Positions 9,630 to 41,340 of a stretch of 64,000 bases of DNA are shown one piece after another (positions within the stretch are counted from its first letter, which is position 1; each line of letters opens with the position of its first letter). A program made the translations under genes and the position numbers. The notes beneath the pieces are model-generated. The model had not been told where the DNA came from, made no database searches, and worked only from the letters and a program-made list of their open reading frames with translations. The DNA comes from Haliotis rubra (taxonomy: Eukaryota): assembly GCF_003918875.1 (NCBI RefSeq), contig NW_025765969.1, positions 1,302,001 through 1,366,000 on the forward strand. The letters are read 5' to 3'.

Positions 9630-10056
9630 CTGAAAGTAACAAAAATCTCGTCAGCTCCATTTTGTGTCGCTGTTCAACTTGAAAAATATTGGCAGTAAAT
9701 TAGGAGTGTATGTATAAGAGTAAATATAGATATTAGCTGCAGGCAGAAAATGCACAGCCCATGCATTACAGACGGAATTTACTTCCATTTCTTGGCGTCC
9801 ATTCTGGAAGCACCAAGAAAATGTCACTTTCTGAACAAGTTATTCTCAACTCTGTTTTCAGCTTCACATTGCAAGACAACTAATGCTGTGTTTTTCTGAC
9901 TTAGGGTGCAAGGCTTCAAAAATAAAAGAATGAGGAATCAATTCCAATTCTTTGTTACTAGTGAAAACAATAACCACTCTGCTTCATCCCCAGTTTACAT
10001 ATCATACAGTAAAGACCACTGTAAGCTAATGCAGGTCAGAAACATGTGCTATCCTC

Positions 10057-10483
10057 TACTGGTGTTCCGATTAATTGAAATAATCGAAGATTGGTCGCAG
10101 TGACCAAACGACCAAGCAATCAATCACATTTTCTCATAATCGAACAAACAATTTTTGAACTACTTTTTTAGTCTTTGAAATACTTGACAATGGAACATAT
10201 CTTAGAAGTTGTCAGGGCCTAAAAACGTGTTTAATTCTTAGAAAACTCACTTCACTAACTGAAAAGCCATGACTGAATATTTCTTGAAGACTCCAGAAAG
10301 TTTATGTTCATGATATATAAGTCATCACTGTAAAGTAGCAAGTTGCATCATGTTATACATATCTGCAATAACAACCTGGATAGGAAAATCTGAAAAATGA
10401 CGCTAACCAATTTTTTTTGGATGATTGTTCGTTGGTAATGAAGCAATCATCAATTGTGAGATTTCAACCAATTCCCAGCACTA
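10057..10483. mobile_element. hAT-like MITE (second copy at 41778-42187)
   Basis: 8-bp TSD ctatcctc; both ends shared with the 41778 copy. Confidence 0.7.
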
Positions 10484-10663
10484 CTATCCTCATGTTGTCC
10501 ATGGATGCAGTCAAACATTTTCTCTCCCAAACAGAATTAACTTAACCCAGCACAACCTTCACATATCTGGTTGCCTGAGAATAACTTTAACATCAGACTA
10601 ACATACACAAACTAGTATTAGTTTAAACAGTCTTTATTTTGACAGAACAAGAGTCAAGTCTGT

Positions 10664-11050
10664 GGCAAACTGGCTACAGGTCTTCTGGTGTTTGATCAAA
10701 CCCGGATGATATATGTACGTCTTCCCACAAACACATGTATATTCAACCGTATCATGAATGTATTTCCCCATATGACAGGGTGAGTCAATGTCAAGCCTGA
10801 AGACCAAGGGCAAACTGGCTACAGGTCTTCTGGTGTTTGATCAAACCCGGATGATATATGTACGTCTTCCCACAAACACATGTATATTCAACCGTATCAT
10901 GAATGTATTTCCCCATATGACAGGATGAGTCAATGTCAAGTCTGAAGACCAAGGGCAAACTGGCTACAGGTCTTCTGGTGTTTGATCAAACCTGGATGAT
11001 ATATGTACGTCTTCCCACAAACACATGTATATTCAACCTTATCATGAATG
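10664..11050. repeat. Tandem triplication (145-bp period) of the second finger and 3' end of exon A5
   Basis: ggcaaactggctacagg...atcatgaatg occurs three times. Confidence 0.9.
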
Positions 11051-11303
11051 GCTGCAATATGATTTCTCCTAGATCTAGTGTTGGCAAAAACTTTGTCACA
11101 TTGGGTGCAAGGCCATACTCGCTTCTGGACACCTCCAGGAAGATCTACATCACACATTTCCATTGTCCCCGTAGGAGGGCCTAAACTGGACATTGACAAG
11201 TTTCGTATGTTGCCTTGGAATGTATTGGGCATTAAATGGCTGCTTGTGTATCTTCCCTGTTCACATTGTGCTAAAGTTTGTCCAAATGAACTCCCATGAT
11301 AAT
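10936..11303 (-). CDS. Gene A variable terminal exon A5, zinc-finger pair
   Basis: Acceptor tttttgttcctttcag, phase 1; CTQC...HIAAIH...CVC...HQKTC. Confidence 0.85.
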
Positions 11304-12241
11304 CTGAAAGGAACAAAAATGAGAAATGACTTGTGACTTGTTCCAAACACACGGTGAAAATATTTCGCTTTATATATTTAGAAACATTACCCCAATCTAT
11401 GCTAAGTTTGTTCAACTTTATGTGGACATATTCCATTGTAAACAAAATTTGTGTTCCGACTTAACCTTATTCCAGCATGTCGTTTTCAATATTTCATGTA
11501 ATCGTCACTATCAACTCCAATATTATGTTCCTTATCTTGATGGAGGTATCGCTGTGATGAAGGACATGAAAACTTGATGTAATCACAATGAGTTTTATTT
11601 GTATCATTCACTTTTACAAATCATTCTTCAGCCTGACAGTCACAACAAAAACATACACACTGATTCATCATGTTCAGACACAGCGTCTCTTACAGACCTC
11701 ACAACTCAACTTAAAAACTCCAGGCAGGGATCTGCACTCAATTTTGAGCCATTGAACAATTACTCCCAAGTTATCACTGACATGGGGAATTGCGAGTTTT
11801 CTTTGGGAACCAATATATTCTCCTTCCCTGAATTAGCAAATTCTACACATAAAGAAGAATATTTTTTTAAATTAACCAAAACAATGTTGTTTCAGTTGAG
11901 TTTTACTTAGTATCTGCTCTACTGATGACCCAAGTAACCTTAGCTCCTAAGAGTGACATAAACATCTAACTAAAACGGAAAAGCAGCACATGTTCTGCGT
12001 TATTTGCTGTAGAAGAGTTCTTGAATGTGTTGTGCCTGCAATACTTGCTCTGTAATGCATCCTGAGTATGTGTGATATATTAGGTAATTATCCAGCATTA
12101 TGGTCTTAGGGTTTCATAGTTTTAATCGGTATTTGTGCACAAACAACTCAAGATTAATTGGTTAATTTGATTTTAAATACTTTATTTTATCTAGTTGAGC
12201 TCCAATGGGACTGACTGGTTGTACAACCTGCTACCAGAACA

Positions 12242-12707
12242 CAGAGCTCAAGATAAGGTTTAGCCCATGTGGGTACTGTACCCACTGTATTTTTTTGGAG
12301 TGGGTATTATGAATGTTGAGTGGGTATTTCAATTTCTGTTACCCACTGCTTTCAAATATGTGCGTATTTCAGTCATTTTACTCACCTAAGTATTATGTCA
12401 TTGAGTAAGTTTACTAAGCAGGTATGTTCTGCCTTATGTCATACCTAATCAAAACCAACTTATATATAATGGAAATCACTCATCCTATACTGACAGTACA
12501 ACACTTGCCCTATACTGATAGCAATCAATGTCATTTTCATTACGCAAGCGATTTTTTATAAATATATTCCGTACGCATTTGTTTTAAACTTTTTGCGTAT
12601 CTAACATTTTTAAATGCGTAATTGGTACACAACAATTATTTTTCAATGCGTATATGGGAATTTTCTATGCGTATTTTACCCGGATACGCAGCTTATCTGG
12701 GCCTCTG
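12242..12707. mobile_element. MITE
   Basis: TIRs cagagctcaagataag / cttatctgggcctctg, 5-bp TSD gaaca. Confidence 0.65.
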
Positions 12708-12954
12708 GAACATTAGTAAAAATCATACTATTAATACTTTAAAAAAAGAGAAAAAATTCAATTAAGAAAAATGCACTTTTGTTATGCAAACATCCATTCA
12801 TAACATGATGAAAATGTGAAGTCAAAAATCAAACACTTTAAAGTTTGATCCTAAACAAGAGAAAATGCCTGATAAAGTCAACCACAAAACCTGAAGGTCT
12901 TTCTTGTATCACTCGAACAGGTAATGAGTTCTTATGGCCACTCATCCCACAAAT

Positions 12955-13132
12955 GGGCGGTGGGGTAGTCTAGTGGTTAAAGCGTTGGCTCATCACGCAG
13001 AAGACCTGGGTTCGAATCCCCACATGGGTACAATGAGTGAAGCCCATTTCTGGTGTCCCCCGCCGTGATATTGCTGGAATATTGCTAAAAGCGGCGTAAA
13101 ACCAAACTCAGTCAGTCAGTCAGTCAGTCAGT
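12955..13132 (+). mobile_element. tRNA-derived SINE family 1 with (agtc)n tail; antisense to gene A
   Basis: Full length, TSD tcatcccacaaat. Confidence 0.9.
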
Positions 13133-13171
13133 CATCCCACAAATACAGCAAAATTATTCCAGGTAATTATA

Positions 13172-13542
13172 TCAGTTGAGTTTGCTCGCAATATGGACGG
13201 GACATGATCGAAGGTGCTTAAACAAGCCCGGCTGGTATTTGTACACCTTGCCACAAATACAGGAAAATGTTTTTTTCTCATGAACAGATTCCACATGATA
13301 CTTCCTAGCATTGGGAGTTGCAAATGTCTTGACGCACTCAAAACATGGATATTTTATTTCATGGATGGCTAGAGATGAACTCTCAGTTTGAAGCCTATGA
13401 AGAACATTCTGATCAAAGTCAAAGTACATTGGCAAGTTTTGAGGAGGATTTGTAAGGAACTGTTCTTGTTTGGGGGTCCTCCAGATAGTTTCAGGCTCGG
13501 TTACAGAACTGGCAGCTCTGTTTCCGCCCAAACAACTCGTAT
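13172..13542 (-). CDS. Gene A variable terminal exon A4, zinc-finger pair
   Basis: Acceptor tttttgttactttcag, phase 1; CFEC...HVESVH...CIC...HLRSC. Confidence 0.85.
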
Positions 13543-14059
13543 CTGAAAGTAACAAAAAGGCTGTGCTAATTTGCCTAAGTTTCACTGACTAAAATTCAAA
13601 GACAGCAGATGTGATCATGTCTTTCAAAAGCGTACTACAGTTTCAGATGATAGTCATTATAAAAAAAAAAGATGACTCATTCAGTAAGATTCCCAAATTA
13701 TACACCACCGCCAGCTGATCCAGACTTGCTTTTCCATGGTTTTTGACACCTTGAACATGTGACAAAAGACGAGTTGAAACAGTACAAGTATGACTGTTAG
13801 CCAACGAATAAACTCTAACATGACTCTGACATAGGAGCACCCTTAAAGGTATAATGCCACTAATATTAAGAGAAGTATCAAGGCACTGGAATAGTTCTTC
13901 ATTGGCTGCAATGAACTTAGGTCTTCTCCACTGGGCTTCACTATTTCTTTGTCTGATTTGCAAACTCAAAACCACTCATCCGCACATCTCAAAACTTGTG
14001 AATCAGTTACACTCATACGTTGTTCAAAATAAATTCAAGGTCCTTGTGATAGGAACAAC

Positions 14060-14403
14060 TTAATCGCCCTGCTCAATCTGAGCCTTGTACATGGAACATG
14101 ATTTTCGGTGATAAAACAGTCCAGTTCTGTACTTGTAAGACCTCCCACAAACACACACAAATGTAATGTTATCATGAATGGCTTCTTTGTGGTAATTCAA
14201 AGCGCAGGGATCTTGGAATATTTTTTCACACTTTGGACAGGGATATTGCTTTTTAGGCGGTTTCAGTTTCAACTTTTTATGCTGCACAATCGAATTATCC
14301 ATAGCATTCATGGACATGACAGGAACACAATTCTGAGCTTGGGCCAGGTTAAAAGACCACTCTTGTGTAAGTTTGTTCAGTCGAGCCATTTGGTCCTGAC
14401 AAT
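14060..14403 (-). CDS. Gene A variable terminal exon A3, zinc-finger pair
   Basis: Acceptor tttttgttgggtttcag, phase 1; CPKC...HKEAIH...CVC...HRKSC. Confidence 0.85.
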
Positions 14404-14498
14404 CTGAAACCCAACAAAAAGCTGCTGAATTGTTTCATCCAACCACAAATTATCACTACGGAGAAACAAGCAACAAATCCTAACCCTCAAGAAACTGT

Positions 14499-14821
14499 TT
14501 AACTTGGCGTCTGGTGAATAATGCAAGTTCTACGATGAGAAAGAAGGCCAGTCCTGTACTTGTACACCTTCCCACATTTGCACTGAAATATCTTTTTATC
14601 ATGAATAGCTTCCCTGTGATAAGCCAACGTTCCAGAATTAGTGAAAACTTTATCACACTGCCTGCAAGGCCAGACTGTTTTCTTTGTGCGAGCAGGTTTG
14701 AGGTTCACCAAACCAGGGTACCCTAGAAAAGTGTTCTCGGCGAAGCCTAGTCTGCCATGAGAAACACCAGAACCAGCCAGATTGCCTGAAGAATGGCTCA
14801 AAAAAGCAGAACTCCAATTTC
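14499..14821 (-). CDS. Gene A variable terminal exon A2, zinc-finger pair
   Basis: Acceptor tttttgttgctttcag, phase 1; CRQC...HREAIH...CKC...HRRTC. Confidence 0.85.
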
Positions 14822-15827
14822 CTGAAAGCAACAAAAAGGTTTCTGCTAGTATTCAGTATGTAAACGTACTTTAATTTTACTTAGGAGAAAAACCAATCAA
14901 ATTTGTCAATGTCTTCAGTTTTGAGCAACATTGGAAAATGAAACTACACATGTCCCCAGTAGAATAATATGCTAAGACATTCCTGAAGAATGCATTATTT
15001 TTTAACAAGAAGCATACCTCAAAAAAGGAAGAGTAACCTCTTCAAAACCAGCTTACTTTCACTACCAATTTCCCTTGTCATATGTCATGTCATCTGTCTA
15101 TCAGCTTTAGGATTCTAAATTCTCAGTATGACCTATATATTCAAACCTGCATACCTCTTTCTGTCATCTTGAAAATGAACTATAACAAGAGTCACAAGCA
15201 GACGTTCTGTTACGTTGACAAGCGAGAACCATCAAAGGAGTAGTTTCCACTTGTACAAATTGAAATGTCATAAAAGTCGTAAATAATGTGGTAAATGAAG
15301 GTGAATCATTTTGGCCAGCTGACAATTATTTTAAGAACCCACAACTTCGACTGGAGGGTCATATCTTTTTATCAAAGGTCATATGATGTGACCTTGATTC
15401 TATGTGTCCTAAGATCTTACACAGCAAGGCACCATTTGGGGATGAATAAGATCTCATTTGAATAAGCATCATCACAGCTTCAATGCTACCCTATATCAGT
15501 TTGTTCTTGAAGAGTATATCACTACATTTACAACATCGACCAATTCCATATAAAATAGACAAAAACCAAGTCATGAGTTAGTGAGTTCTGTTTTATGCTG
15601 CTTTCAGCAATATTCCAGTAATATCATGGCAGGGGACACCAGGAATGGGTTTCACACACTGTACCCCTATGGGGAATGGATCGAACCTGTGTTTTCAGAA
15701 TGACATGCATGCGCTTTAACCATTAGACTACCGCACAGCCCCATAATAATCAAGACAAATGATTGCTAGAATCAGAGTCTACAAAACAAATCAGACCAAT
15801 GTCAGAAGCTTGCCTACCCTTCATCTA

Positions 15828-16114
15828 CTAGGATGGATTAGAGTAAGTACACATCTTCAAATGCTGGGCTAAAACCGATTTGGAGTAAAACACTCTTCCA
15901 CAAAGACAAGTGAAAATGTTCATCTTGTGCAACGTTTCTCTGTGGTCAAGCATGGCGACCGAGTCTGAGAAGACCATTGGGCACTGAGGACAAGGCCAGG
16001 TCATAACATTAGAAGATTCAGCTGCAGAATCATGTCTCAAGCCGATGCTTCCTCTCTCTAATCTGGGTTTAGTTCTGTAAACCCATGAGGAGGTGTGTAC
16101 AGATCTGGATGCAT
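15828..16114 (-). CDS. Gene A variable terminal exon A1, zinc-finger pair
   Basis: Acceptor ttgttctcctttccag, phase 1; CPQC...HRETLH...CLC...HLKMC. Confidence 0.8.
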
Positions 16115-18053
16115 CTGGAAAGGAGAACAACCTCAGCTACAGTCACATGCCTCGCCACTGTCAAATGTTCATACAAAATGATGAGCTGGTTTGGTTTTTC
16201 ACCATGTTTGAAGCAACATTCCATAACAAATACCAGCAAGTGAGTAAGTTGCTTTTTGCAATATTCAAGTAATATCACACCAGGTGACACCGAAGATGGC
16301 ATCACACATATACCCATTTGGGGAATCAAACTCGACATGACATGTGTATGCTTTAACAATACTGCTAACCCCTTCCCCAAATACCAGAAATGAGGAACAC
16401 ACTGCTATTAATATACATGTCCAATCCAGGTGGCTAACGCACATAATATGCCACTGCCATCAAATGCTAATGAATCTTTATGATATGGAACTTGAACTGC
16501 AAATTTCTTTTTGACATTCAAATAGAACAATATTTCAATATGCTTCGGGAAGATAAAAAAACAATGTCGAGTACAGCGCTCAGGTAAGAAGATCCTTTGA
16601 AACAAACCATGTATCTAAAAACTAAATAAGAGCCACTGCAGAGTCACAAGATTGACAAGGCAGTTTGCAATTCATGTCAAAGTTGACAAAACATGAATGG
16701 CTGCAGGGTTCGTTCCCTGGCTTGATGTCAGTCTTGTCAGAAGGAATGCCATCCACACAGATGTTGAGAAAGAAGACGAGAAAACAATACCACCACTCTC
16801 ACAAGAACTGAACGAACAGTTGATCTGAAATATCAATCGCTGTTGCTATTTTAAGATCCTTAAACAGTATGGTGCCAATTCTCTCCGGCCTTGCACCAAC
16901 AAATGGCAACTCTTCAAAAAGGTATGGACACAAGGTATCAAACCCACATCAACTACTTGCTCAGTTACATCAAAATTGATAGTGAAATTTATACCATCAA
17001 GAATTCTGGTTAGTCTTATTCCCACAAGGCACTTAAGCCCTGATTGAAGTTAAGATTTTGTGAAATGTGTCTACATCTGTATTCCACACAACTTGTTTCA
17101 ACTTGTCAAGACCATGCTACTACAAAACTCAACATAGCTCATGAGAACCCAAGCATCAATATTTGTGACATTAGTGTCTTTACCCTTGAGAAGCAAAGTA
17201 CAAAGTGTACCATCTCAAATAAAGTACTTCTATCTATTGTTAAATATCAGCATCAACTCTATCAACATCAATAAACCACTCTCAGGAAAACAGTATTGCT
17301 TCCTCATAAAAGCTTGATTTTTCCACATTTATTGTAAAGTTCAATATACTTCTTTGCAATATTCAACCATGTTACATCTCTGATATTTACAGAGGGTAAG
17401 AAACTTAAGTCTCTCTTTCAACTGTTACATCTTGCAGATAATCAAATAAATATAGATAGTATCAGAAAACTATCAGAATCACTGGGGGTGATGATCAAAG
17501 TAGTAATACAGTTGAATACAGCAAGATACAAAATGCTACTAAACAAGGTCACACACAATACTTCAATTTCATTAACAATTCTAAAAAACAAAATACTCCT
17601 TCAAATTTGGTCAGTCAATGAAATGGAAGTATCATATAGTGACAGATCAGATATTTGTGTGACAATGCATGCAAAAACCTATGTGTATTCAAGGTCACTG
17701 GAAAATTCTGCAAAGTAAGCCTGAATATTTTGAAATAAAAGTGACAAATTATCTGTCCTTTTCATATAGTGAGAAAGCAATCGATGTTGCTATTGGCCGA
17801 TGTACCATAGTTGACCCAATAATACAGTATACAAAGTGTAAAAAGATAGTAATAAATAATGCACATTATACAAACACCTCTATGACAAGGAAACAACCCA
17901 GAGAAGTACCAAATGCCTCCATGACCTGCTACAATAAACCTGGTGTGTGTGCTTTGCTTTGTGTCCAACTCAGGCTTGCATACATCCAAGCTCCAAAGAA
18001 TGATGTGTGAATAACGTGTAAAAGACAAACAAGAGTCATCCATTCTTGCAAAC

Positions 18054-18059
18054 TTTATT
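18054..18059 (-). terminator. Putative poly(A) signal after the last constant donor of gene A
   Basis: AATAAA followed by a GT/T-rich tract (tcttgtttgtctttt); context conserved with 29129. Confidence 0.55.
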
Positions 18060-18259
18060 TCGTAAGCAGTGCATGTGTGTTCATGTGAAAACCTTGGGTA
18101 TCTAAAACGTGGTATTATTACGTCAAGTATGGTACATCAGTAATTAAAATCTTAATTTGCAGTAATTTACCAATGTTTTGACCTGGTCTATCGTTGTTGA
18201 GCTTGAGGACGACCTACCCCAGGCCACAGTTGAGTCAGGAAGCCAGTGTGTGGACTTAC

Positions 18260-18292
18260 CTTGTGATGCCAGGAACCACGCCCCCATCATCG
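18260..18292 (-). CDS. Gene A constant mini-exon (33 nt, AMMGAWFLASQ)
   Basis: Perfect AAG|GTAAGT donor; identical to 28645-28677; symmetric phase 1-1 if the tacag acceptor is used. Confidence 0.7.
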
Positions 18293-20296
18293 CTGTACTG
18301 TGGCACTGGGTGTGTCAACATGGCAAGTGACAAGATGGATGAACTCTGACAGTCATTTCATTTTTCACTTTCCCCATATACATTAATGCCAATCCAATTT
18401 GGCCAAATCAAGACTTAGCATTGATTAATCAAACCCAAGCCCCTCCATCTTATTACTTAACTGAGTGCATGTATCTGTAGTGCTGTTTGGTGCTTGAATT
18501 ATCTTACTTTAACTTGAAAATAGCACCAGAAAAATTACTCAAGTTACTCATAATGCATGCACGTTTAAAATATCTTTAGTGAATCTGAGCCTGTGTTGGA
18601 TCATTGACAGTATTTGCATCAAGAATATACAAGCTCAATTTGAAAAACGGGGGGAAGACCAAGGGAGACAACTCTTGTGGGGTTAAGACAACAGGAAGTC
18701 AATGTTGAAGCCATTTCGGATTGAGCGTGACAAAAGCTTTTGTTATCTTTCAGAGCACTGATGACAATAAATGCTGCCATTTGCCATCTCAATTCATTAA
18801 CAATAATGGATAGATACCAACAAGATACTGAACTGCCAATCTTTAGTGATAACACCCCTTTCAAGTTTCAGAAGCAATCTTGGTGCTAGCTAGTTGCAGA
18901 TAACTATGGTATTGAACTGAAAGAACTAATTGAAACCTTTCTGGCACAAAAAACCCTATTTCTTCAGTTGCACTAAAGATTTTCAGATACTTCCAATAAT
19001 GATGTACATAAATTAATATGTTCTGGTGGCCTATTTATCACCAGCAAATGAGAAAGGTACATTTAACTTCAAATTTCAATTCAAGGGCCCTCAAAGTACA
19101 TTTCACAACTATCACAATGAATAGATCTTGCACATTTTTAAAAGCTCTGTCTGCACAACTCAGGAAAATGTCCAAAGATTCTTGACTACATACCATGATC
19201 AAGCACAGTTCAGATATTATAGAACTGCTGGTCAGCATGAAAAGATTGTTTTAAAAGCACGCCTTCACAAAGAATATGCCAAAATGAAACTGGTACAAGG
19301 CAAAAAGTCAGTATAGGCTGGATCTTTGGGTTAATTTGTATCCCAAACTGTCTTGTATAGGATGAAAAGCATAAAATTTATTTAGAACTACTGTACCTTT
19401 ACATCTCATATATTCCAATTAAATATTATTGTATTTCACCTTTTCCTTGACCTTGGGGCCATCAACTGTTTGAATAGTCCTTACAGAAAGGTCCCATATA
19501 TTAATGTATATTAATGCAGAGCTCTTGATGGATCAGAAAATTTGCCTTAGCCTTCAAGTTAGAGGCAATTTTTCCTAACAAGTTGACATCCTTGACAAAT
19601 TTCTAGGCCTGGTTATACTTATTACAAGACCTTTTGTCGACTATGTGGAATGGAAAATGCATATCACTATTCGTTCATATAGGGGCTGCAATATATTTAG
19701 TCTGCATCTCTTATTGACAGTTGTGTAAACCAAATGGACATTTCTAAGAAAGAAATAATGGCTTTATTCTGACGCCAAACTACAAAATTATATTTTGATT
19801 CAGAAAGAAATATGGCCTGATTGTTTATCAGTGACGAAATTTAGCCACTCGTACAGTCTGAACATCCAGGGACAATCCACCTTTCATGTCAACTAGTTAT
19901 TTGTTTTAACTATTTTGTTGCTAACTGGGATTTCTTTCGAGTTTCAATGAGTCTTGTCAGTTACAAAAAACACAAAATTTGTCTCACTGTACTACCAAAC
20001 TGAATTACGATGTATATATTCCTAGACTGGAATTCAATAGAAATTAGCTGCTGAATCCAATAGCTGCCCCTGAGCAGGTCTAGATAACCCCCTGATGTTA
20101 CATAAAGAACATTACGACTTTATGTTAAAATGTGCAACACTTCCATAAATCTTCAAAGGACATACTTGTGCTTTTCAGATAAAGATTTTGCGAAACTACT
20201 TGAAATTTTACAGCATTAGTTTTTCGTTTTTTTAGCAGAATACATTTCATGAAGAAACCAGCAGTTCTGTGAGGATGTATTTCAAAAGATAATTAC

Positions 20297-21188
20297 CGTC
20301 ATTGCTGTAATCTGCTTCGTTATCATCGCCGTCGTCATTTTCATCTTGGAATACTAAAAAGTCATCTGCACTTTGGTCACCATATCTTGCTTGACTAGTA
20401 CTGGGTTCGGCGTAATCTGGCACATGTGGAACGTTTTGATAGAAGGACGATGATGAAGAACCGGGTGATTGAGAATGTGATGATTGTGGATGAGAGAGTC
20501 GATCTAAAGCTGCCTTGGACGTTTGCGTATGAGGTACATCGGATGAATAATCTATTTGCATGTATGGAGTCTCTTTCTTTGGCACAACATCATCAGGATC
20601 ATGGTCTGGTTCTATTTCTATTAAATCTGGATCTTCTGGTTCTTGTTTCACATTCACTGGAGTGTCATTTTTGGGTTTTGATTGATGAGAGTGATTTGAA
20701 GGACTTGAACTTATTTGAGAATGTGGACGACGATGAACAGGTGATCTGGGTCTTGGAGACTCAGAAAAAGAAGTCCTACTGCTTTTTGCAGCCGGCTGTG
20801 GCATAGACACAGAACTTTCATGCAGTCTTTTGGCAGGATGTGACAAATATACTGTTTGCTGCACCGTTTGTATTGTGGACATATTATTAGAATTGTAATT
20901 ATCATTGTCATTTTCTTGAGGCATTAATGTGCGGTCCACATCAAACACAGAGAGTTTTAAAGTCTTACATTCACTCTTTGATATCATGCTTGCATTTGAC
21001 GATACTCCGTCCACTTTGAACGTTAGTTTGTTTGAGCGTAACACAACCTGCACATTGGCATCTTGCGTTGTGCCGTATGAGTTCACTGAGGCCGGGAATT
21101 CAACATTGGAAGTCGGCCCCTTTTGAAGCGAGGAAAATACATTGCACAATTCCACAGGAATCGTGAACTCTAGTGTTTCAATAAACAT
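20297..21188 (-). CDS. Gene A constant exon: unknown N-terminal domain + S/P/acidic linker of a putative transcription factor
   Basis: Paralogous to 25676-26543 from MFIETLEF onward; similarity ends at the phase-1 donor G|gtaatt; VKQE SUMO-type motif. Confidence 0.85.
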
Positions 21189-21520
21189 GTTGATTATGCA
21201 GAGGACCACAACACAAATATCACAAACCGCTTGAATTATTCCGATTAATGAGCAGTCAGACGATCGGTATATCACCGGTGATGATAAAACCTCACGTTGT
21301 AGCTGGTCGCCATTGTTTGCCAGTTTCGAGCAGGTGCGCGTTCAGAAAAAAAACACTCTTCTTGACCTACCCACAAGCCTCAATTTGAACGACTGCAAAT
21401 GTACACATTAACAGTCTTTGATATCTATTAAATGTGCTGCAAGGAAACTCGGCGACGAAATGAGTTCTTTCACGTGGTAAACTTGGTTTGTAATCTTCTT
21501 CCTGGCCACATTCAAATTTC

Positions 21521-21531: not shown

Positions 21532-22046
21532 ATCGTAGCGTCAATTAACATTCGGAGATCATCGGTAACGTCCGGCGCGCCCATAGAACACACAATGAAA
21601 GTGCGCCCGAAATGTTCCGAGTTTACCCGCCAACGGAGACGAAAAATATTTTCCTTCCAACTAGTTTAATATTTAGATAAAGGCTTCAATAATATCATAG
21701 AAAAAATACTATGTGAGGTTCCGAAAGTAACGTTCTGGGATGTTATTTTCTAGATAATTTGTTCCAGAAGAAGAAAAAGAAGAAAACTATGTGTCCTCAG
21801 GTTACACATAACAGATTACACTGTTCGCTGTACAAGCTGAATATGTTTAAAACATGTATTGTAAACAGAAAATAAGTGTAGGGGGCTTCTCGTGGACGGA
21901 AACGAATGTGAATCAATTTATCAGAGGTGTGCCAGATAAAGCCGAAATATTGTCACTGTGGCGTAACACACCTGTCACTCAAATATATAGTACCTTTAAG
22001 GCATAAATAGCCACTGTTGAATATTATATGCCTTCTATTTTCAATA

Positions 22047-22206
22047 GGGGCGGTGGGGTAGCCAAGTGGTTAAAGCGTTCGCTTGTCACGCCGAAGACCC
22101 GGGTTCGATTCCCTACATGGGTACAGTGTGTGAAGCCCATTTCTGGTGTCTCCCGCCGTGATATTGCTGGAATATTGCTAAAAGCGGCGTGAAACTAAAC
22201 TCACTC
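22047..22206 (+). mobile_element. tRNA-derived SINE family 1
   Basis: Full length, TSD tctattttcaata. Confidence 0.9.
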
Positions 22207-22870: not shown

Positions 22871-22883
22871 TTAATGTTCGTGA

Positions 22884-23046
22884 GGGACGGATGGGTAGCC
22901 CAGTGGTTAATGCGTTCGCTCGTCAAGCCGAAGACCTGGGTTCGATTCCCCACATGGGTACAATGTGTGAAGTCCATTTCTGGTGTCCCCCGCCATGATA
23001 TTGCTGGAATATTGCTAAAATTGGGGTAAAACCAAACTCACTCACT
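22884..23046 (+). mobile_element. tRNA-derived SINE family 1
   Basis: Aligns to family consensus. Confidence 0.85.
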
Positions 23047-23427
23047 GAAATGTTGCACAAATCAACCTCTATCAATTAGACTTACATGGTCTTTTCAGTT
23101 CCCATAACACTTTCTCTTGTAATTTTACATGCAAATATATGATGTAACTTGGACCCAATTTTATAGTCGATTTCGGTATATCTATAATCGTCGGTCAGAT
23201 GTATCACGCAAGAGGTTGAGCCCAGTAAATCTGCAAAATGTCTTGACCACTTAGTTGTATTAAAGTGGTAAGTTATTTGACCAAATTATATCGCCCATAA
23301 GACCGGGGTTAGCCTTGTATGTGTCGTCGTATCAGATATGTATGTTTCAATGTTTTCGAAAAATAGATTCATCGTTGTTTGGAAGTATCGATGTAACATT
23401 TTGATGAACTGGAAGTTTTGTAATAGA

Positions 23428-23482
<55 letters not shown>

Positions 23483-23491
23483 GTGATGATG
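23428..23491. repeat. (GAT)n microsatellite
   Basis: About 21 GAT units. Confidence 0.95.
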
Positions 23492-23732
23492 AAAGATTAA
23501 CTCAGTCAAAGTATGTCCGTGGTGCATCAAATTTGTGGAAGTTCCCACCCGTGAGCATGATTCATTTGCTCCTCAGGCCCCTATAGCAAGAAGCTCCATT
23601 GTTCCTCAAGGTTGGAGCTGACAGAATACTACAAAAATAGCTTTGGGAAAGTTCAGCTATCAATCTGATGAAACAGTAACTGTGCAGAATATTTTGTCAC
23701 TCTTCATACACAATTTCAGACGTGCAACAATG

Positions 23733-25675: not shown

Positions 25676-26543
25676 ATGTTCATCGAAACGCTTGAGTTTA
25701 CAATTCCTGTGGAATTGTGCAGTATTTTTTCAAGCCTCCAGAAGGGCCACAGGTCAAACGTTGAGTTTCCTGCATCAGTGAACTCTTATGGCACAACGCA
25801 AGATGCCAATTTGCAGGTTGTGTTACGCTCAAACAAACTAACGTTCAAAGTGGACGGTGTGTCGTCAAATGCAAGCATGATATCAAAGAGTGAATGTAAG
25901 ACTTTAAAACTCTCGGTGTTTGATGTGGACAGAACATTAATGCCTCAAGAAAATGACAGTTACGATTCTAATAATATGTCCGCAGTGCAGCATTCAACAC
26001 CTGTGTCATTTCCATCCAAAAGACATCATGAAATCTCAGTGTCACAGCCACCTGCTAAAAATCGTAGGACTTCTTTTTCTGATTCATCAAGACCCAGATC
26101 TCCACTTCATCGTCGCTCACAACCTCAATCCAGTCCACGTCCATCTATTAACACACAATCAAAATCCAAAAATGACTCTCTGGTGAATGTGAAACAAGAA
26201 CCAGAAGATCCAGATTTAATAGAAATAGAACCAGACCATGATCCTGATGATCTTGTGCCAAAGAAGGAGACTCCATACATGCAAATAGATTATTCATCCG
26301 ATGTACCTCATACGCAAACGTCCCAAGCAGCTCTAGATCGACTCTCTCATCCACAATCATCACATTCTCAATCACCCGGTTCTTCATCATCGTCCTTCCA
26401 TCAAAACGTTCCACATGTGCCAGATTACGCCGAACCCAGTACTAGTCAAGTTCATCATGGTGACCAAAGTGCAGATGACTTTTTAGTGTTTCAAGAACAA
26501 GACGAAGATTGTGATGACAACGATGCTGATTATGGAAATGATG
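25676..26543 (+). CDS. Gene B constant exon: unknown N-terminal domain + S/P/acidic linker
   Basis: 289 codons + 1 nt, phase-1 donor G|gtaatt at the same position as in gene A. Confidence 0.85.
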
Positions 26544-28644
26544 GTAATTATATTCTTCAGTTCTTCATCCTTCAGAAGCTGCTGGCCATGCTCACAACTT
26601 TCCAAAGTTTTGTATTTGAGTAGGCAAGATTAGGAAGGCAATTCATTATTTAATCAGGTCCTTGCTTTACTGAAAAACTAACCGTAAGAAACATTCTTTG
26701 TATGGGGAAACATTGCACAGTTATTTGGGCTGCAACAAACCATATTAAAGTCAAAATAAATGTTTAAGAGAGTTGACTAATGTCCTGCCTTGGTTAAATA
26801 TTTTTCATGTTGCATATCGTTCCTGCAGTATTGAAACAATCTCAAACTCAGAAGTTTTCCCCCCAAATCTGCAAAAGGTGTGTGTAGGCTGAATCTATAT
26901 TCTGAAATATGGAAATAAACTTAAACGGTACATTGTTATGAGCATTTGATAAACATATGGCATATTTTCCTTCACTGGTGAAGAGTTGATAGCAAAAACT
27001 GAGGGTTCAAAGTGGTGATTTGTAATTGAATTGAGAGTAATTTCTTATTCAATTAATAATGGAAATTATTACAAAAGCAAGTTGCCTTCCTAATGTTTTT
27101 ATAAAACAGATTCACAAAATTTCTAAAGGGTGACAAACACAAAATATCCAACATGACTACATATGGGTAAACATTTACCAAGCTGAGAGGCAGATTTAGA
27201 AACAATGGCAAACACTTTGAAAGTATCCTTGGTCATTCAGTTTATAAGAATGTAAAAAAAAAGAGATGTCTTGGTAGTCCTCCTGCTTCCATACATTCCC
27301 AGCATAGTTTTTGCAAATCGTAAAAATTAAGTTGCAGCAACTGATATTGCTTAATGATTCAGAGACATTTACATGTTTTTTCATTTTCACTGATCAAGAT
27401 AATAAGCTTTGCTTGTGGATGGGCCCAGGTTGTTTATCAAAATGGAATGGAGCTTTGATGCACTTAATTGTCAAGGATGTAATTTAAGGTGCTCAGCTCC
27501 TTTCCTGACTGTAAATCGCCACCTAAATTTTTGTGTAGTAAGTAGTTCAATATTGTAAGTGATTGAAATTAAAAATTGAAATTAATTCACAACACATTTT
27601 GTTCATGACCTCAATATTGCTGAAAAAAAGTTCCCAAATAGTATGTTTGAGATGACATTTTGAAAAATGCTGTCGAGGAAATTATGTTGTTGTGAAACAT
27701 CCCTCCAGATCTATCTTGTGATAAAATCGGTTGCCACACCGGGGTGTATTTTTGTTAACTTTGACGGTACATGTGCTGTGATTATTCCTGATGGATTTGG
27801 TTGCCCAGACAAGTTCTTAGCATTGCCAGCAGTTTGTTTTTGTACAAAGTTTGATCATGAACATTAATTGAGAACTTACAATTCTGTAACATTTTAATAC
27901 TGATAGGTGAACTTCTGAACCATAGTCGAAGATACATTTTTATTATTTGTTAAGTTAGGTGTCCCTGTTTATACTTCTCAAAGAAAGTCTAAGGATCAGC
28001 AGATTTTTATGTTGCTATAGTTACTGTCATGCTGTAATACCATCTATGCTGTTCATGACATGGAGTAATTATTGTAATGTGAAAGTATTGTGTTCCTTAA
28101 ATGATCTGGAGTAGTATTGATGGTGCACGTAAACATGAACAGTTGAAAAACACAATTTATACTCAGATAGATTTTTGTCTTTGTTACTTAATCTTTAAGT
28201 GTTGATTGGAACATCAGAAAGCTTGCATGATAGTTAAGTTAAAGGGTGTATTTGCATTTATTGTTTTGGCGTATTTCAAGTCTTTGTGTTCTCAACAAAT
28301 AGTGTTAATGATCCAGCTCTGTCAAAAACAGTTTCTTTAAAATGTTAAAATTAAATCACGTTTTGTGTGTAAAAGTAAATGTCAGTGTTGGTGCCTTGTT
28401 TTAATTTATGGTAATTGTTAAGCACCATTTTTAGTTATGTACACACATGCACTTATTTAGCAGGTGACAAGATAGATTGATAAACCTGGTGAGGTTTTTC
28501 ATTCTGTGAAATTAAAACTGGTTTTAGCTACATAAACTGTTAGAAGAGTCAAAAAGGGATGAGTGAAATTGCTCAGGAAAGAGTTTCCTCCCTTTAATCC
28601 ATCTTGTCACTTGCCATGTTGACACACCCAGTGCCACAGTACAG

Positions 28645-28677
28645 CGATGATGGGGGCGTGGTTCCTGGCATCACAAG
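28645..28677 (+). CDS. Gene B constant mini-exon (33 nt)
   Basis: AAG|GTAAGT donor at 28678; identical to the gene A mini-exon; acceptor choice inferred from frame. Confidence 0.7.
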
Positions 28678-29128
28678 GTAAGTCCACACACTGGATTCCT
28701 GACTCAACTGTGGCCTGGGGTAGGACGTCCTCAAGCTCAACAATGATAGACCAGGTCAAAACATTGGTAAAATACTGCAAAATAAGATTTTAGCCACGTA
28801 TGTACCATATTTGACACAGTATTAAATAATACAGGGTTTTATTTCATAATTATCTGAAGCTGCCATAATCTTGTTCATGCTCTGGTTCCCGTTGTATTTT
28901 ATTTTGGTATTTTGGACTTTTCAATTTTCTCCTGTTAGCAATATAATTGGCACAAAGTTTCTAAGAAAAATTTGAGAAGTATATGGATGAAATTGTTAGC
29001 TCAAGTCTTCACTGCCAACATGTACCCAGCCCATTTTATTCAGTCTATAAAATTTGATAATAAGCCTGGATTTGTGGTGAAATAGAACCCTTCAATATTA
29101 CATATAAACACACATGCATTGCTTTATG

Positions 29129-29134
29129 AATAAA
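29129..29134 (+). terminator. Putative poly(A) signal after the last constant donor of gene B
   Basis: aacacacatgca.tgctt...AATAAAgt.tgca conserved with gene A; T-rich downstream element. Confidence 0.55.
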
Positions 29135-30506
29135 GTCTGCACGGTTGGATGAATTTGGTTCTTTCTTCCCATGTACGTTATCTTGACTCAACCGAGGTAG
29201 TTGATTGGTCACCTTGGAATGTGGAAGATGGTAAGACCGTGAAAAGTTGTGGTTCTGATTAACTTTAAACTTGAATGTATTTTAAAACTTCAGTAACAAC
29301 TTTGAAATTGGCCTGTCGATATATTCTATAACCTGTTAATTTTATAAACAAGAAATAAAGATAAAATAAAATATTTTAAAAAGCCCAAAACCGCTGCAAG
29401 ATGGATCCAATTTAATCTGAACCACAACTCCTTGGCCTGAGTACACACAGTGGCACACATTCAACATTGTTTCTTCATGTGTTATGAATTCTGTGTCAAA
29501 CATGGTACAAGTGTCATGAAGTTGAGGATGAGAAAAAGTTATCTACCAAAGGTTGAAAAATAATGTGCCTCATCAAAGTACTGATTTGCTTGTGTAGATA
29601 AACATAATTCCTCCAGCTGTTAATTGCCCAAGTGTAAATGTAACTTAGTTTTATAGATTTCAAGTCTTCACTTATTTTGCATATTTTCCCATTACCTGAA
29701 AAACATTAAGGGCTATCAAACATGCACTAGCGAACAGATAGGAATGTTACTATGTCTCAGTGGCTAATATTGAATATTGTTGACCATATTTGACCAATTA
29801 TGTGTATGTAGTCTTTGTTTGGGGTATAAATAATGTTATCACATCTTTGAACTTGGAACATTGACATGTATCATCTCCAACTAAAGTGTGTTGATTTTGT
29901 TTGGGTAATATTGATGTATAAATGATCATTTAAGGCAGTGGATCATATTGTCTGAAAATATAGTTTTATACATAAGAGGTCAGATGTGGTTTTGTACGTA
30001 AGTGTTGTTGTCTAATACTTTTGATATATGATAATTTACTAATACTCTTGTGGATGAACTTGTTTTACTGCTTGTAAGATACATACACCCTATGTGTTTG
30101 ATACACACTTCAGTGAGATATGACTATATTTAGTGTAACCACATGTTGGGATTTTGCTATGGCGGACTTGATATCAATATTTCGTGATGAATGAAGAAAA
30201 CTACGAGTCTTTGTGAAAGTGATGTTTAATCAGGATCGAGACATGTTGACGACCGAGGGAATACTTTTTCTCTGAGAAATACTGACATTTGCCTTTATCC
30301 CATTTGAAGGACCTTGATCTTCAGATGAATATTTCAAGGAGTACTAGGCCCAGTTTGGACAAGATTCGATTGCTTGGTGTTCAGATCTGCGTTGCATAGT
30401 GCGATTGCAAATGAAACAGTTTGATGTAATATGACCATTCACTTGGCCAACAATTATAGGCATGATCACGTGATATCAAGAACCAGGGACACTGAATGAT
30501 AATCAC

Positions 30507-38575: not shown

Positions 38576-40492
38576 CCTTGGATGGACAGTGTGCGAAATT
38601 TACGCTGGTCCTGTGGTCCCTGGCTAGTAAAAATGCATCAGGACCACTAAAGTTTGCAGTGGACCTTGTGGCCAGTGAATTTTGTATTGATAGTTCAGTA
38701 AATCTACGAATGTTATTTTGGACCAGTGAAGTACAGACAGGACCACCAATTATTGTCCACTCACTGGTCCTGTGGTCTTGCGGGAAATGTTGAAAGGTTT
38801 CTTTCCCTGATGGAGTGTTTTGTTGCTGCTTGTCTCAGCAATATTCCTTAATGTCATCACAGCAGCTGATAAACGATTGAATCTGGAAAAAACAATACAG
38901 TGAAAAATATCACGGTCAAGGATCCATGCCATTGGGGTGCGATAGGCTGTCGACAATAACTTTACCTGATCAACATATTCATTTAGTCATCTCTAAGGTG
39001 CAGGTTGCTGGGGGGCCAATTTAAATCTGGAATTCCCTTGAGTTAAATTGCTGATCTGAGACAAATCACTGCCAAAGTTTGTGTCAAAACTTTTATTAGT
39101 TTCTCAGTCTGTACCAAAAACGTTTGAGAAAACTACCCTGAGCATTGCTCTTAGCCCCATTTTCAGTAGAACTTCTGACTTTTAGGGCTATTAATGGCAG
39201 TGCTAACTCGTCCGAAAATATTTTGCTCAATTTGGACTTTGGATCAGCGGTCAAAGCCACACACTGTTGTCAGCTTGCTGCTTTTGATGCTTAGCAATTG
39301 ATGTGATGAAATGTCGCTGTGAAGGAGGAAGAGTGCATAGGAGGTTGTTATGAAGCTCCTTCAACAAAATACCCATCTCCAAGGCGTCCAAGGGTGGTGT
39401 TGCTGGTTTCATAATTTTGTTTTTGTTGCTGATCCTATTCAAAATGGGAGAAATGATTCATGCATTCATAATACATTGTTGTGTAGTTTATGCAGGAATC
39501 TTGTACTAAAGCGGGACTTTCAGCCAGACACTGCATGTGTTGTTTGAATGTTTTCGGTCAAGATCTTCTGTGATGAAGTCTTAGATTTTATGAAGTCTTA
39601 GATTTTCTTGTGACCAGGGTAACTGTGGTAGTTAATGAAGTGTATCCCCTACCTTGTGTTTCTCTCTTGGTTATCTCTGGTGCTGTGTGTCCATGTGTTC
39701 TTAGATATTTTCGTCTCAAGTAATTACAATGTTTCAGGGTTTCACATGAGTCATGTATGTTGGACCCAATAGAAGTCTGTTTCAGATGTTCCGCATGATT
39801 TCATCATGAAGTGTTTTAAGCGACATAATGTTTGTGATATCGTCATGGTTACCAATGTCAATATAATCAAATCATGCATTTCTCTGTAAAATAATTATCA
39901 TTGAGTCATGATTTCTAACTATTTCACACAAAAGAAGGTAAAATCCTCAGGTTGTTATGCCATCACCATGTTTGCCCCGGCAAGGTTGCATTTGAAAATA
40001 AAGATGTCGGTATATATTTGTGTTGGTCATACTTTTATTTTTTTATGTACCTATAACGTTATAACAATAAATAATTTCATATCAAAATTTGCCAAATCGG
40101 TATCTGCAGTCTTACATGTGCTGCTCATTTGATGGGTGGATGAAGTTATACGATTCTTTGAAGACAGCCCGATTTTGGACTGTTGTCCAGTCAAAACTGA
40201 ACTTTCCACTCCTTCTGCAGGCATTAGCTATGTCACAGTTGAGTCAGAGACAGTTCTGCTGATTGCTGCAACAATGTGGATGTCTGGCCTGATGTAGAAC
40301 AAAAATATGCAAGAGTACATAATCCTATATGCTTAGGCATGTAAAGAGTTAAAAACAATCCCGTTAAAAAGAAATGAATTGTACAGTCTGAACGTAATTA
40401 CGTGAAAACAAATTGTTTGAGAAATATTTTATCATGCCTTTAAGAAACAAAAGAATATTCTGATGGACTCTTGCATATTTCTGCTGTTTCAG

Positions 40493-41340
40493 GCTGTCAG
40501 GTACACTTTGACACAACGTCAGGTGACCTCCAAACCCACCAATCAGCAACTGTGTTTGATACATCAGGTGACCTATCAACAGGCACGTTACAAAGACAAA
40601 TGACCGTGTTTGAGCCTAAGAAAAGGAAACTGACTGTGAAATCCTTAGAAACAAAGTTCTTAGCCCTGTTGGAGGTGGAGAAGGGACAGCAATCCAAGGC
40701 CCAAATAGCCAGGGAGTTTGGAGTTCCCCCGAACACACTGTCCACGTGGTTAAAACAGGCTGATAGAATCAAAACCGCTTATTTAGAATGCAGCTTCAAC
40801 CCAACTCGTAAACGTCTCCGAAGCGTCCAGTATGAAGATGTTGATGATGCTACTTTACAGTGGTATAGAAATGCTATCATGAATGACTTTCCAGTGTCTG
40901 GTCGTATCCTCTTGGCCAAGACCCAGGAGATTGCTCTACAACGAGGTCATGTAGATTTCAAGGCTTCTCTGGGTTGGTTGGAAAGGTTTAAGTGTAGACA
41001 CGGCATCACTTTTGGGAAGGGGAAGGGAAGACACAAACAGTTCAAATCCATGATTGATGAATATGGGCCAGTGGATTACACAGTTTCGGAAAATAGACAT
41101 GATAATGTTGGAGTGGAGGCGAAAGATGGCGCTGAAGCTGTTGATTACACGAAAGTCGAGACAAATCCAGGTCGTGAAGGTCGTGCAGTGTGTGAAGGAA
41201 ACACAGATGATGATGTTGTAGACTACACCATGTCTGAAACTAAGCTTGATGAGCATGACAATTCGTCAGAAGCTAAACTTTGTAGTCAAGATGGTGAACT
41301 GTTTTCGGATACTAAATATTCAAGTCAGGATGGTGATTGA
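40493..41340 (+). CDS. Gene B variable exon B7: pogo/Tigger/CENP-B-type double HTH, no DDE domain
   Basis: Acceptor ttctgctgtttcag, phase 1; IAREFGVPPNTLSTWLK and FKASLGWLERFKCRHGI motifs; acidic tail then stop. Confidence 0.85.

Follow-up and report, generated by a model that had tools for sequence, protein, structure and literature searches.

The window analyzed here, a 64,000-nt stretch of the Haliotis rubra genome that is free of N, contains two paralogous genes arranged head-to-head, LOC124275011 (gene A) and LOC124275018 (gene B). Each comprises a single constant coding exon (exon 1) and arrayed alternative last exons that encode zinc fingers (Table 1; slashes mark splice junctions). 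RNA-like contigs cover the constant exon of gene A, and the exon 1 donor, G/GTAATT, scores 8/11 matches, i.e., it is not weak. The variable exons all share the strand of their own constant exon, and cis-splicing therefore suffices to join them. The acceptors of the variable exons have a 15-nt motif in common across paralogs (45 matches versus 9 expected), and the exon phase at the constant/variable junction is the same in all paralogs. The constant exons (289 to 297 amino acids) matched no Pfam family at E ≤ 1, so that the BTB/POZ domain by which homology to lola or mod(mdg4) would be recognized was not found. A search among 1.84 billion representatives for relatives of the constant region outside Haliotis found none, returning 10 clusters that all belong to this genus. 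Judged by these sequence comparisons, the zinc finger gene family is young and specific to Haliotis. Its loci span 75 to 100 kb, and the introns can reach about 100 kb.

Table 1. Features of the two paralogous genes, in positions of the window
Feature	Position	Strand	Details
Gene B constant coding exon	25676..26543	+	ATG start, phase 1 end, donor G/GTAATT; 100% identity to P0001 residues 1-289
Gene A constant coding exon	20297..21188	-	Donor G/GTAATT; 100% identity to P0065 and P0095 residues 1-297
Conserved intronic block, gene B (LOC124275018)	28597..28792	+	5/196 positions differ from A copy
Conserved intronic block, gene A (LOC124275011)	18145..18340	-	Repeat search and ungapped comparison
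139-nt core of block	28597..28735	+	Indel-free in 9/10 copies; A counterpart 18202-18340 (-)
Predicted 13-bp stem, 5′ arm	28627..28640	+	Covers CACAG acceptor; partner 28707-28719
Exon-like unit	28640..28677	+	38 nt from CACAG/; 33 nt from TACAG/ at 28645; A counterpart 18260-18297 (-)
Invariant 24 nt	28669..28692	+	CATCACAAG/GTAAGTCCACACACT; 10/10 copies, four species; longest invariant run
Predicted stem, 3′ arm	28707..28719	+	ACTGTGGCCTGGG, invariant in 10/10 copies
Second small A/B-shared island	29098..29160	+	AATAAA at 29129-29134, 451 nt past pseudo-donor
Second island, A counterpart	18028-18090	-	AATAAA at 18059, 200 nt past pseudo-donor

Around what it took to be the last constant donor, the original prediction described a 196-nt block, nearly identical in the two genes, which lies beside a consensus donor within the intron that precedes the variable arrays. 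Ungapped comparison of the gene B block with the reverse complement of the gene A block confirmed that the two differ at only 5 of 196 positions (28695, 28725, 28744, 28772, and 28782) and are identical over their first 98 nt; in a repeat search, they came up as an inverted repeat of 231 nt (93%). The 5′ edge of the block is sharp at 28597, with identity of only 6 to 9 in 20 nt just upstream, and the 3′ edge fades over about 28795 to 28820. BLAST comparison of the whole gene B intron with six paralogous introns found the block as the sole sizeable shared island, together with tiny islands; the surrounding introns therefore do not align, which also agrees with the prediction. Across seven paralog lineages (A to G) from four Haliotis species, each gene carries exactly one block (10/10 copies), 1.4 to 3.8 kb past the exon 1 donor and ahead of every variable exon, and the block is far more conserved than the coding exon. 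The predicted element adjoining the consensus donor is real, conserved, and non-random. It is not a mobile element, being present in one copy per 75- to 100-kb locus in constant place and orientation. Read-through coding from the microexon frame to the TAG at 28790 to 28792 was ruled out by indels of 1, 3, and 5 nt that follow the core in other paralogs. An Rfam search of both strands from 28300 to 29100 at a permissive threshold gave chance-level matches only, all outside the block, with no snoRNA, snRNA, or miRNA family.

The prediction divided the block into 48 nt, a 33-nt exon ending at the last constant donor, and 115 nt of intron. As sequence, this layout is correct, with 33 nt lying between an AG and GTAAGT. 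Its reading as a constant exon found no support in annotation: among 236 annotated isoforms from the four Haliotis species, none includes the 33- or 38-nt unit, and all 236 join exon 1 straight to a variable exon. Candidates for transcripts with the block were rejected. The "GGAWF" match in isoform P0005 belongs to an ordinary finger exon, the short isoforms of H. rubra LOC124274985 are frameshift products (..ALISEMM..) and do not contain the block, and Logan contig L009 is unspliced genomic DNA and not mRNA.

The exon-like unit has two forms, for which the reading frame was taken from the phase 1 end of exon 1. From the invariant CACAG/ acceptor, the unit is 38 nt long and contains an in-frame TGA, with a stop within four codons in 10/10 copies (VQR-stop in nine, V-stop in crach_G). 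From the TACAG/ acceptor, it is 33 nt long, stays in frame, and encodes AMMGAWFLASQ, the frame being open in all 10 copies. This second acceptor has changed to TACAA in both H. asinina paralogs; the CACAG acceptor and the donor are invariant. Substitutions within the unit are five nonsynonymous versus one synonymous, and TGGTTCCTG.CATCACAAG has no change at third codon positions, a pattern which indicates that constraint acts on the nucleotides and not on the peptide. A branch-point-like TTGAC is present in the block, and the polypyrimidine tract of the unit is the weakest at the locus (0.50 to 0.55 versus a mean of 0.72). The longest invariant run is centered on a consensus 5′ splice site, AAG/GTAAGT. 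This donor, AAG/GTAAGTCC, makes 8 contiguous matches (−2 to +6) to the U1-complementary consensus CAGGTAAGTAT. Within the window, neither gene has another AGGTAAGT on its sense strand, and the probability that a 139-nt block contains a perfect AGGTAAGT in sense orientation by chance is estimated at about 0.002.

One explanation for these signals is a genuine cassette exon that is rare or limited to certain tissues. The 33-nt microexon would add AM(M/K)GAWFL(A/T)SQ at the point where the constant region meets the finger module, and the 38-nt "poison" exon would stop after VQR, giving a fingerless protein or a decaying mRNA. The unit has a full set of exon signals, its 33-nt form keeps phase 1 with an open frame, every copy retains the stop of its 38-nt form, and conservation of the flanks, as found around it, is typical of exons that are regulated or act as poison exons; in addition, annotation would contain few poison isoforms. 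UGC motifs lie upstream of its weak acceptor, as they do upstream of the weak acceptors of regulated microexons. However, the unit is absent from every annotated isoform, and the block is covered by no contig in the RNA-like runs X2 and X4, whose contigs do cover exon 1, although both runs are small, are only guessed to be RNA, and were available as assembled contigs, which would miss rare or tissue-specific inclusion. The lost acceptor in H. asinina, the unconstrained peptide, and the weak polypyrimidine tract also speak against splicing of the unit, and the stop would lie only about 27 nt ahead of the last junction. We consider a cassette exon unlikely.

Absence from isoforms would also fit a traceless mechanism. 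In a zero-length recursive splice site, exon 1 would first be joined at AAG/, regenerating a stronger donor (ATG/GTAAGT), and then be joined to a variable exon. The AG/GTAAGT juxtaposition is invariant in 10/10 copies, and ratchet points are highly conserved (PMC4387717). In contrast, AAG is a poor acceptor, and the 18 nt before it are G-rich and, by eye, about 50% pyrimidine, with no clear branch point seen. In introns that can reach about 100 kb, a site at about 2 kb would hardly serve to subdivide them, and the conservation reaches far past what a ratchet point needs. Recursive splicing here is very unlikely.

To examine how the block has evolved, we compared divergence of its core with that at fourfold sites of exon 1. 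Paralogs of H. rubra differ by 1.4% in the core versus 25 to 31% at fourfold sites (Fisher p = 2e-27), and orthologs differ by 4.8% versus 11.5% (p = 6e-4). Copies within a species are therefore closer to one another than orthologs are, which differ by 4 to 6% in the block. Core position 48 has a state common to H. asinina A and B, position 124 one common to H. rubra A and B, and position 107 one common to the five Californian copies C to G, at which H. rubra C is unlike its ortholog; a 1-nt deletion is common to E, F, and G, and no core site follows orthology. In the DNA runs X20 and X22, the depth of the gene A block is about 9 to 11 times that of single-copy sequence. Because within-species paralogs are closer than orthologs and share species-specific changes, we attribute the A/B identity to gene conversion, which the original prediction had named as an alternative and which these patterns identify as the proximate cause. 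Since orthologs are less diverged in the block than at fourfold sites, these comparisons indicate that purifying selection acts on the block besides conversion. Ortholog alignments of the introns of B and C have a local conservation peak at the block; the ortholog divergence of copy B (5.8%) is near its neutral proxy (7.2%). With much of the identity owed to conversion, the part that functions could be a short one or one located at another place in the island.

These data also bear on the possibility that the block is a neutral island of homology, without function and kept alike by conversion among clustered paralogs. Concerted evolution is clear from the shared states, from the deletion in E, F, and G, and from the lack of any site following orthology; there are about 9 to 11 identical copies in the DNA runs, and conversion limited to the island would give it sharp edges. 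Yet conversion alone does not slow change in the family consensus, which differs between H. rubra and the Californian species at about 2 of 139 sites, whereas fourfold sites differ by 15%. Moreover, orthologs fall below the neutral proxy, the adjoining homologous 870-nt exon is un-homogenized (13 to 24% divergence), and a perfect donor sits inside the most invariant run. We give neutrality little chance.

A DNA-level regulatory element of the first intron (an enhancer, an insulator, or an internal promoter or alternative first exon), in which the splice-like motifs are incidental, is highly improbable. In one variant, transcription would start inside the block, and the ATG at 28647 would open a leader, MMGAWFLASQ, in phase with the variable exons. 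This ATG is kept in all copies with a phase 1 end at the donor, and the intronic, promoter-near position and sharply conserved 5′ edge suit such an element. However, conservation is lacking upstream of that edge, where a promoter would be expected, no RNA-like contig lies on the block, an out-of-frame ATG (28615) precedes the proposed start within the block, and an incidental perfect donor is unlikely.

The original prediction assigned the block a possible role in controlling pairing with distant acceptors and pointed to a possible stem, ggcctgg/ccaggtc, within it. This stem is lost in crach_D, and in the computed folds GGCCTGG has a different partner, an arm that lies upstream. Of the predicted 13-bp stem (Table 1), the 5′ arm has two substitutions, an A-to-G change giving G-U and one at a bulged base, both of which allow pairing; the stem is unproven because there is no compensatory change, and the 10 copies contain no covariation within it. 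Folding of the whole block was not significant (204 nt, z = −0.5; 139-nt core, z = −0.3 to −1.6). A 98-nt subregion, picked after the fold had been seen, gave z = −1.8 to −3.4 in 10/10 copies, and a local fold there is a possibility according to these models.

As a docking or pairing element, the block would bring distant acceptors to the donor, and the constant region of either paralog could be joined by trans-splicing to the array on the other strand. The common block, exon phase, and acceptor motif would make the parts interchangeable, and mod(mdg4) and lola are mutually trans-spliced via a common pseudo-5′ splice site (PMC4387717). However, the duplex energy of the block with the shared acceptor motif was no better than that of shuffled blocks (−8.9 versus −8.6 ± 1.7 kcal/mol), so that no special complementarity was found. 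Against the whole upstream regions of the variable exons, the block scored only slightly above controls, and the values of control intron segments overlapped its own. The annotated gene models, in which trans joins would not be visible, include no chimeric product. We see a very slim chance for this model.

The block probably acts on RNA processing. The explanation that we favor, tentatively and by analogy with the TSA element of Drosophila mod(mdg4) and lola, is an intronic pseudo-exon that recruits U1, which we regard as quite possible. The block would be an exon-like element, a pseudo-exon or decoy exon, placed after the constant exon and ahead of the alternative last exons and made up of TTGAC, a weak acceptor (CACAG or TACAG), 33 to 38 nt, and the invariant donor AAG/GTAAGT. 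On the nascent transcript, U1 snRNP, and perhaps also U2, would assemble on this element and change the fate of the constant-exon transcript by one or both of two routes. The upstream exon 1 donor might be kept available, in cis or in trans, for joining to variable acceptors far away, or the conserved poly(A) signal 200 to 450 nt downstream might be silenced. A local fold may hide the acceptor and in this way keep the unit out of the spliced product. Against recruitment of U1 stand the complementarity of 8 bp, which is under the ≥9 bp used for TSA-like motifs, and the exon 1 donor, which is not weak and so has no obvious need of help. A bolder version, which we regard as a long shot, holds that the block is an independently evolved molluscan counterpart of the TSA element, bound by U1 and joining the constant exon to separately transcribed variable exons, with the cluster forming one combinatorial superlocus. 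About ten paralogs have an identical element, exon phase, and acceptor motif. If this version were true, constant regions and finger exons would be exchanged in trans between genes and strands.

The closest precedent, in line with the original prediction's reference to mod(mdg4), is the intronic element of mod(mdg4) and lola, described in 2015 (PMC4387717), by Tikhonov et al. in 2018 (PMC6237743), and by Soldatova et al. in 2026 (PMC13490949). In both systems, one or more constant 5′ exons are followed by tens of alternative 3′ exons with DNA-binding modules. In both, the element is among very few conserved stretches in the intron past the last constant donor, contains a consensus donor (AAG/GUAAGU type), and is followed by a conserved stretch related to termination or poly(A). 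The Drosophila donor is unused in mRNAs, and the abalone donor is absent from the 236 annotated isoforms and from the contigs of the two RNA-like runs. In lola, the distance from the start of the intron to the motif is about 2.2 kb, within the range of the abalone element (1.4 to 3.8 kb). Like TSA-type elements, the abalone block occupies the last common intron, between the constant donor and the variable exons, and is conserved across species (24 nt in 10 copies from four species) in an intron that has otherwise diverged. The two differ in that there is no sequence homology, the phylum is another, and the abalone constant region is not BTB. Predicted U1 pairing covers 8 bp in abalone versus 9 and 12 bp in the Drosophila elements. 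Unlike in mod(mdg4) and lola, the abalone donor forms part of a complete exon-like unit, about 140 nt long, that gene conversion has homogenized among at least seven paralogs. In the TSA type, constant and variable exons belong to separate transcripts with promoters of their own and are joined in trans, some exons coming from the other strand, whereas the abalone variable exons are all on the strand of the constant exon.

Other classes share some of these traits. Decoy exons of retained introns are a known class with which the block can be compared. Poison exons and regulated microexons are, like the abalone unit, short and conserved into both flanks, with an in-frame stop (38 nt) or a kept frame (33 nt); unlike them, the unit is in no annotated isoform, has lost one acceptor in a whole species, and encodes an unconstrained peptide. 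Dscam-type docking likewise involves a single conserved intronic element near the constant part and many mutually exclusive variable exons, but the complementarity upstream of variable exons that marks docking and selector sequences did not exceed controls for the abalone block. Ultraconserved pseudo-5′ splice sites (Ding et al. 2026, PMC13100119) are likewise strongly conserved intronic donor-like motifs for which U1 snRNP action has been proposed; they are never spliced. Pseudo-5′ splice sites and decoy exons regulate a neighboring cassette exon or intron retention, whereas what follows the abalone element is a series of alternative last exons; this element is conserved among paralogs of a young, genus-restricted family, not between phyla.

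We know of no system other than Drosophila mod(mdg4) and lola in which it is understood how one donor is kept available over tens of kilobases for alternative last exons. In these genes, the process centers on a U1-binding pseudo-donor conserved in the intron. The abalone element is an intronic island that is both homogenized by conversion and, as the divergence data indicate, held by selection in at least seven paralogs. Hybrids of H. rubra and H. laevigata exist commercially, and with them trans-splicing could practicably be tested in an allele-aware way. That an abalone family unrelated to these genes, restricted to one genus and lacking BTB, combines their architecture with an element of like kind and placement would point to a convergent, general solution, for the testing of which this family would offer a second, independent system.

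Both constant exons in the window were 100% identical to those of annotated Haliotis rubra zinc-finger paralogs, LOC124275018 on the plus strand (gene B) and LOC124275011 on the minus strand (gene A). Behind exon 1, the sole coding constant exon, each gene carries alternative last exons arrayed on its own strand, the majority encoding a zinc-finger pair. A 15-nt acceptor motif, TTTTGTTRCTTTCAG, is common to the variable exons (45 matches versus 9.1 expected, allowing ≤3 mismatches), and the extended motif is far more uniform than in ordinary acceptors, which may be relevant to one donor serving many exons. The constant region (289 to 297 amino acids) matched no Pfam domain or family; its relatives were confined to Haliotis (10 clusters among 1.84 billion representative proteins, all ≥64% identical). 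At least seven paralog lineages (A to G) occupy one chromosome region, and a single paralog can have 40 or more annotated isoforms. In H. rubra LOC124274985 (paralog F), all annotated isoforms (proteins P0132, P0133, and P0135 to P0138) read ..NSALISEMM.. where ..NSADFGND.. is expected at the end of the constant exon, followed by out-of-frame short tails; its orthologs in H. asinina and H. rufescens are intact, and the H. rubra gene reflects either an assembly frameshift or a pseudogenised paralog. A pogo/CENP-B-type helix-turn-helix module is annotated as a variable exon in A-type and B-type genes and occurs as two tandem diverged copies (526-1101 and 1872-2360) in contig L009, which is genomic and comes from a different abalone run. 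Given these tandem copies and the annotation in both gene types, the captured transposase module has itself undergone duplication within the arrays.

Features of the A/B locus in window positions (slash, exon-intron boundary)
Feature	Positions	Strand	Remarks
Exon 1 of B, sole coding constant exon	25676-26543	+	ends in phase 1 at G/GTAATT
Exon 1 of A, sole coding constant exon	21188-20297	-	ends in phase 1 at G/GTAATT
Block in B	28597-28792	+	139-nt core at 28597-28735
Block in A	18145-18340	-
Predicted 13-bp stem in B block	28627-28640 with 28707-28719
Second A/B island	29098-29160	+	76% over 63 nt
Second A/B island	18028-18090	-	76% over 63 nt
Acceptor-motif array	1-17000	-	matches at variable-exon acceptors on the array's own strand
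Acceptor-motif array	31000-64000	+	matches at variable-exon acceptors on the array's own strand
GAT/ATC-type triplet repeat	23380-23500		long; poly-D or poly-H reading
~140-nt repeat family, examples	5709-5853; 22046-22183; 22881-23025; 53174-53323	both	SINE-like
pogo/CENP-B-type module	40471-41340

The original prediction took a 33-nt exon-like unit inside the block to be the last constant exon. Continuing the reading frame of exon 1, which ends in phase 1, the 33 nt flanked by TACAG/ and /GTAAGT would encode AMMGAWFLASQ. Neither that peptide nor a variant of it occurred in the isoform proteins retrieved from four species (0/236), and in all mapped gene models ..DY(G/S)ND is followed immediately by a variable exon beyond the block; the real constant donors are at 26543/26544 (B) and 20297/20296 (A). 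We also placed sequencing contigs of four runs (assembled contigs, not reads) on positions 15700-21400. Two runs with transcriptome-sized contig sets (~50 Mb, inferred to be RNA) covered exon 1 and its 5′ side, and across the same interval these sets had nothing on the intron or block. Because isoforms and models lack the unit and no contigs of the ~50-Mb runs fall on the block, we place the block within the intron, ~2 kb past the real constant donor. In the 38-nt form of the unit, every copy runs into an in-frame stop no later than the fourth codon (VQR-stop in 9/10, V-stop in H. cracherodii G). A cassette or poison exon that is seldom used is an unlikely reading of the unit.

Besides window genes A and B, we compared paralogous and orthologous loci from H. 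rubra (C), H. cracherodii (C, D, and G), H. rufescens (E and F), and H. asinina (A and B), for ten block copies in all. There is exactly one block per gene, in constant orientation, 1.4 to 3.8 kb past exon 1 and before the first variable exon. A DNA-level element is a very improbable reading of the block. The copies are 90 to 96% identical to that of B, even where exon 1 DNA identity is only 77 to 79%. As originally noted, the surrounding introns do not align, the block being the only substantial island common to paralogous introns. Its sharp 5′ edge is identical in 10/10 copies, and the 139-nt core is indel-free except for one 1-nt deletion common to E, F, and G. The longest invariant run across the ten copies is 24 nt, CATCACAAG/GTAAGTCCACACACT, centred on a consensus donor. 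Of the cross-species conservation and covariation proposed as a check, conservation was found, and comparison of the ten copies showed no covariation in the predicted stem.

Judged by its sequence, the block bears the signals of a putative exon of 33 or 38 nt: TTGAC lies 17 to 22 nt ahead of two acceptors, one (CACAG) unchanged in every copy and the other (TACAG) missing from H. asinina, and the pseudo-donor has 8 contiguous matches to the U1-complementary consensus. On each gene's sense strand, AGGTAAGT occurs within the window in the block only. The unit's pyrimidine tract is poorer than any other at the locus. A zero-length recursive site at AAG/GTAAGT, which would draw on the same invariant donor, is improbable. 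The constraint on the block acts on nucleotides rather than peptide: changes are 5 nonsynonymous to 1 synonymous and third positions near the donor are invariant. If formed, the predicted stem would mask the acceptor, and the unit would lie inside it; a 98-nt sub-region, chosen post hoc, folds better than shuffles in 10/10 copies, whereas the whole-block fold was not significant against shuffles. No Rfam family matched the block. It also has no complementarity to the shared acceptor motif, which speaks against the suggested pairing with distant acceptors. A second small A/B island, centred on AATAAA and followed by GT/T-rich sequence, is found 200 nt (in A) or 451 nt (in B) past the pseudo-donor, where it may mark a conserved site of polyadenylation or termination close behind the block; a poly(A) hexamer occurs 126 to 555 nt past the pseudo-donor in 10/10 copies, weakly above chance.

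The reported near-identity of the A and B blocks was reproduced (5/196 differences after reverse complementation), with no difference in the leading 98 nt. The 5′ edge is abrupt, the 3′ similarity fades at ~28795-28820, and a repeat search of the window returned an inverted repeat of 231 nt (93%) for the pair. The pair belongs to a larger inverted duplication that has the constant exons of A and B as its other arms; the window contains no N. The triplet repeat sits in the 4.5-kb A/B spacer, near the centre of this duplication, and the ~140-nt repeat family (81 to 93% identity) recurs at more than 15 places besides 5709-5853, in both orientations, across both arrays and the spacer. In the other two of the four runs, which are clearly genomic, block depth was ~9 to 11 times single-copy, with no mismatch over 99 to 119 nt. 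Contigs of both runs connect the block 5′ edge (18340) with a 29-nt exon 1 piece (20344) through an unknown intervening stretch, and several distinct loose ends begin exactly at 18340; these are most simply explained as contigs of other paralogs, matching A solely at conserved islands.

Among H. rubra paralogs A, B, and C, divergence was 1.4% in the block core, 13 to 17% at all exon 1 sites, and 25 to 31% at exon 1 fourfold sites; the corresponding ortholog values were 4.3 to 5.8%, 3.7 to 6.7%, and 7 to 15%. Within-species paralogs are therefore closer than orthologs in the block. Core states group by species, against orthology: position 48 changes from AG to AA in both H. asinina genes, position 107 is T in five Californian copies (C to G) and C in H. 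rubra C, position 124 is G in H. rubra A and B, and E, F, and G have the deletion in common. No core site in the ten copies supports orthology, a signal that returns in the 3′ tail and flanks. This pattern is concerted evolution by gene conversion, which the original prediction had listed as an alternative and which directly accounts for the 5-in-196 identity. Besides conversion, there is selection on the block, because pooled ortholog divergence is below that of fourfold sites (20/417 versus 43/374, p = 6e-4), the H. rubra family consensus differs from the Californian one at ~2/139 sites (versus 15% at fourfold sites), and the block forms a local conservation peak when B and C introns are aligned between orthologs. 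A neutral conversion island, which would share the species-wise pattern, has correspondingly little probability.

The closest precedent by analogy, not membership, is the TSA core, the intronic trans-splicing element of mod(mdg4) and lola, which in lola lies ~2.2 kb into the intron (PMC4387717), has a conserved termination-related sequence downstream (PMC6237743), and is surrounded by redundant protein-binding motifs (PMC13490949). In contrast to that system, the abalone block has no homology to TSA, its pseudo-donor offers only 8 bp of U1 pairing, and the constant region has no BTB domain. Ultraconserved pseudo-5′ splice sites, which act through U1 (PMC13100119), provide a second precedent. 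Trans-splicing is nowhere required by the A/B gene layout. The best-supported reading, held tentatively, is that the block may be a pseudo-exon within the intron, with a donor that attracts U1 snRNP but is not itself joined. Going beyond sequence anatomy, conservation, and annotation, we infer each step of this mechanism: the pseudo-donor would recruit U1 snRNP and be left unspliced, and the pseudo-exon would thereby affect processing of the constant-exon transcript.
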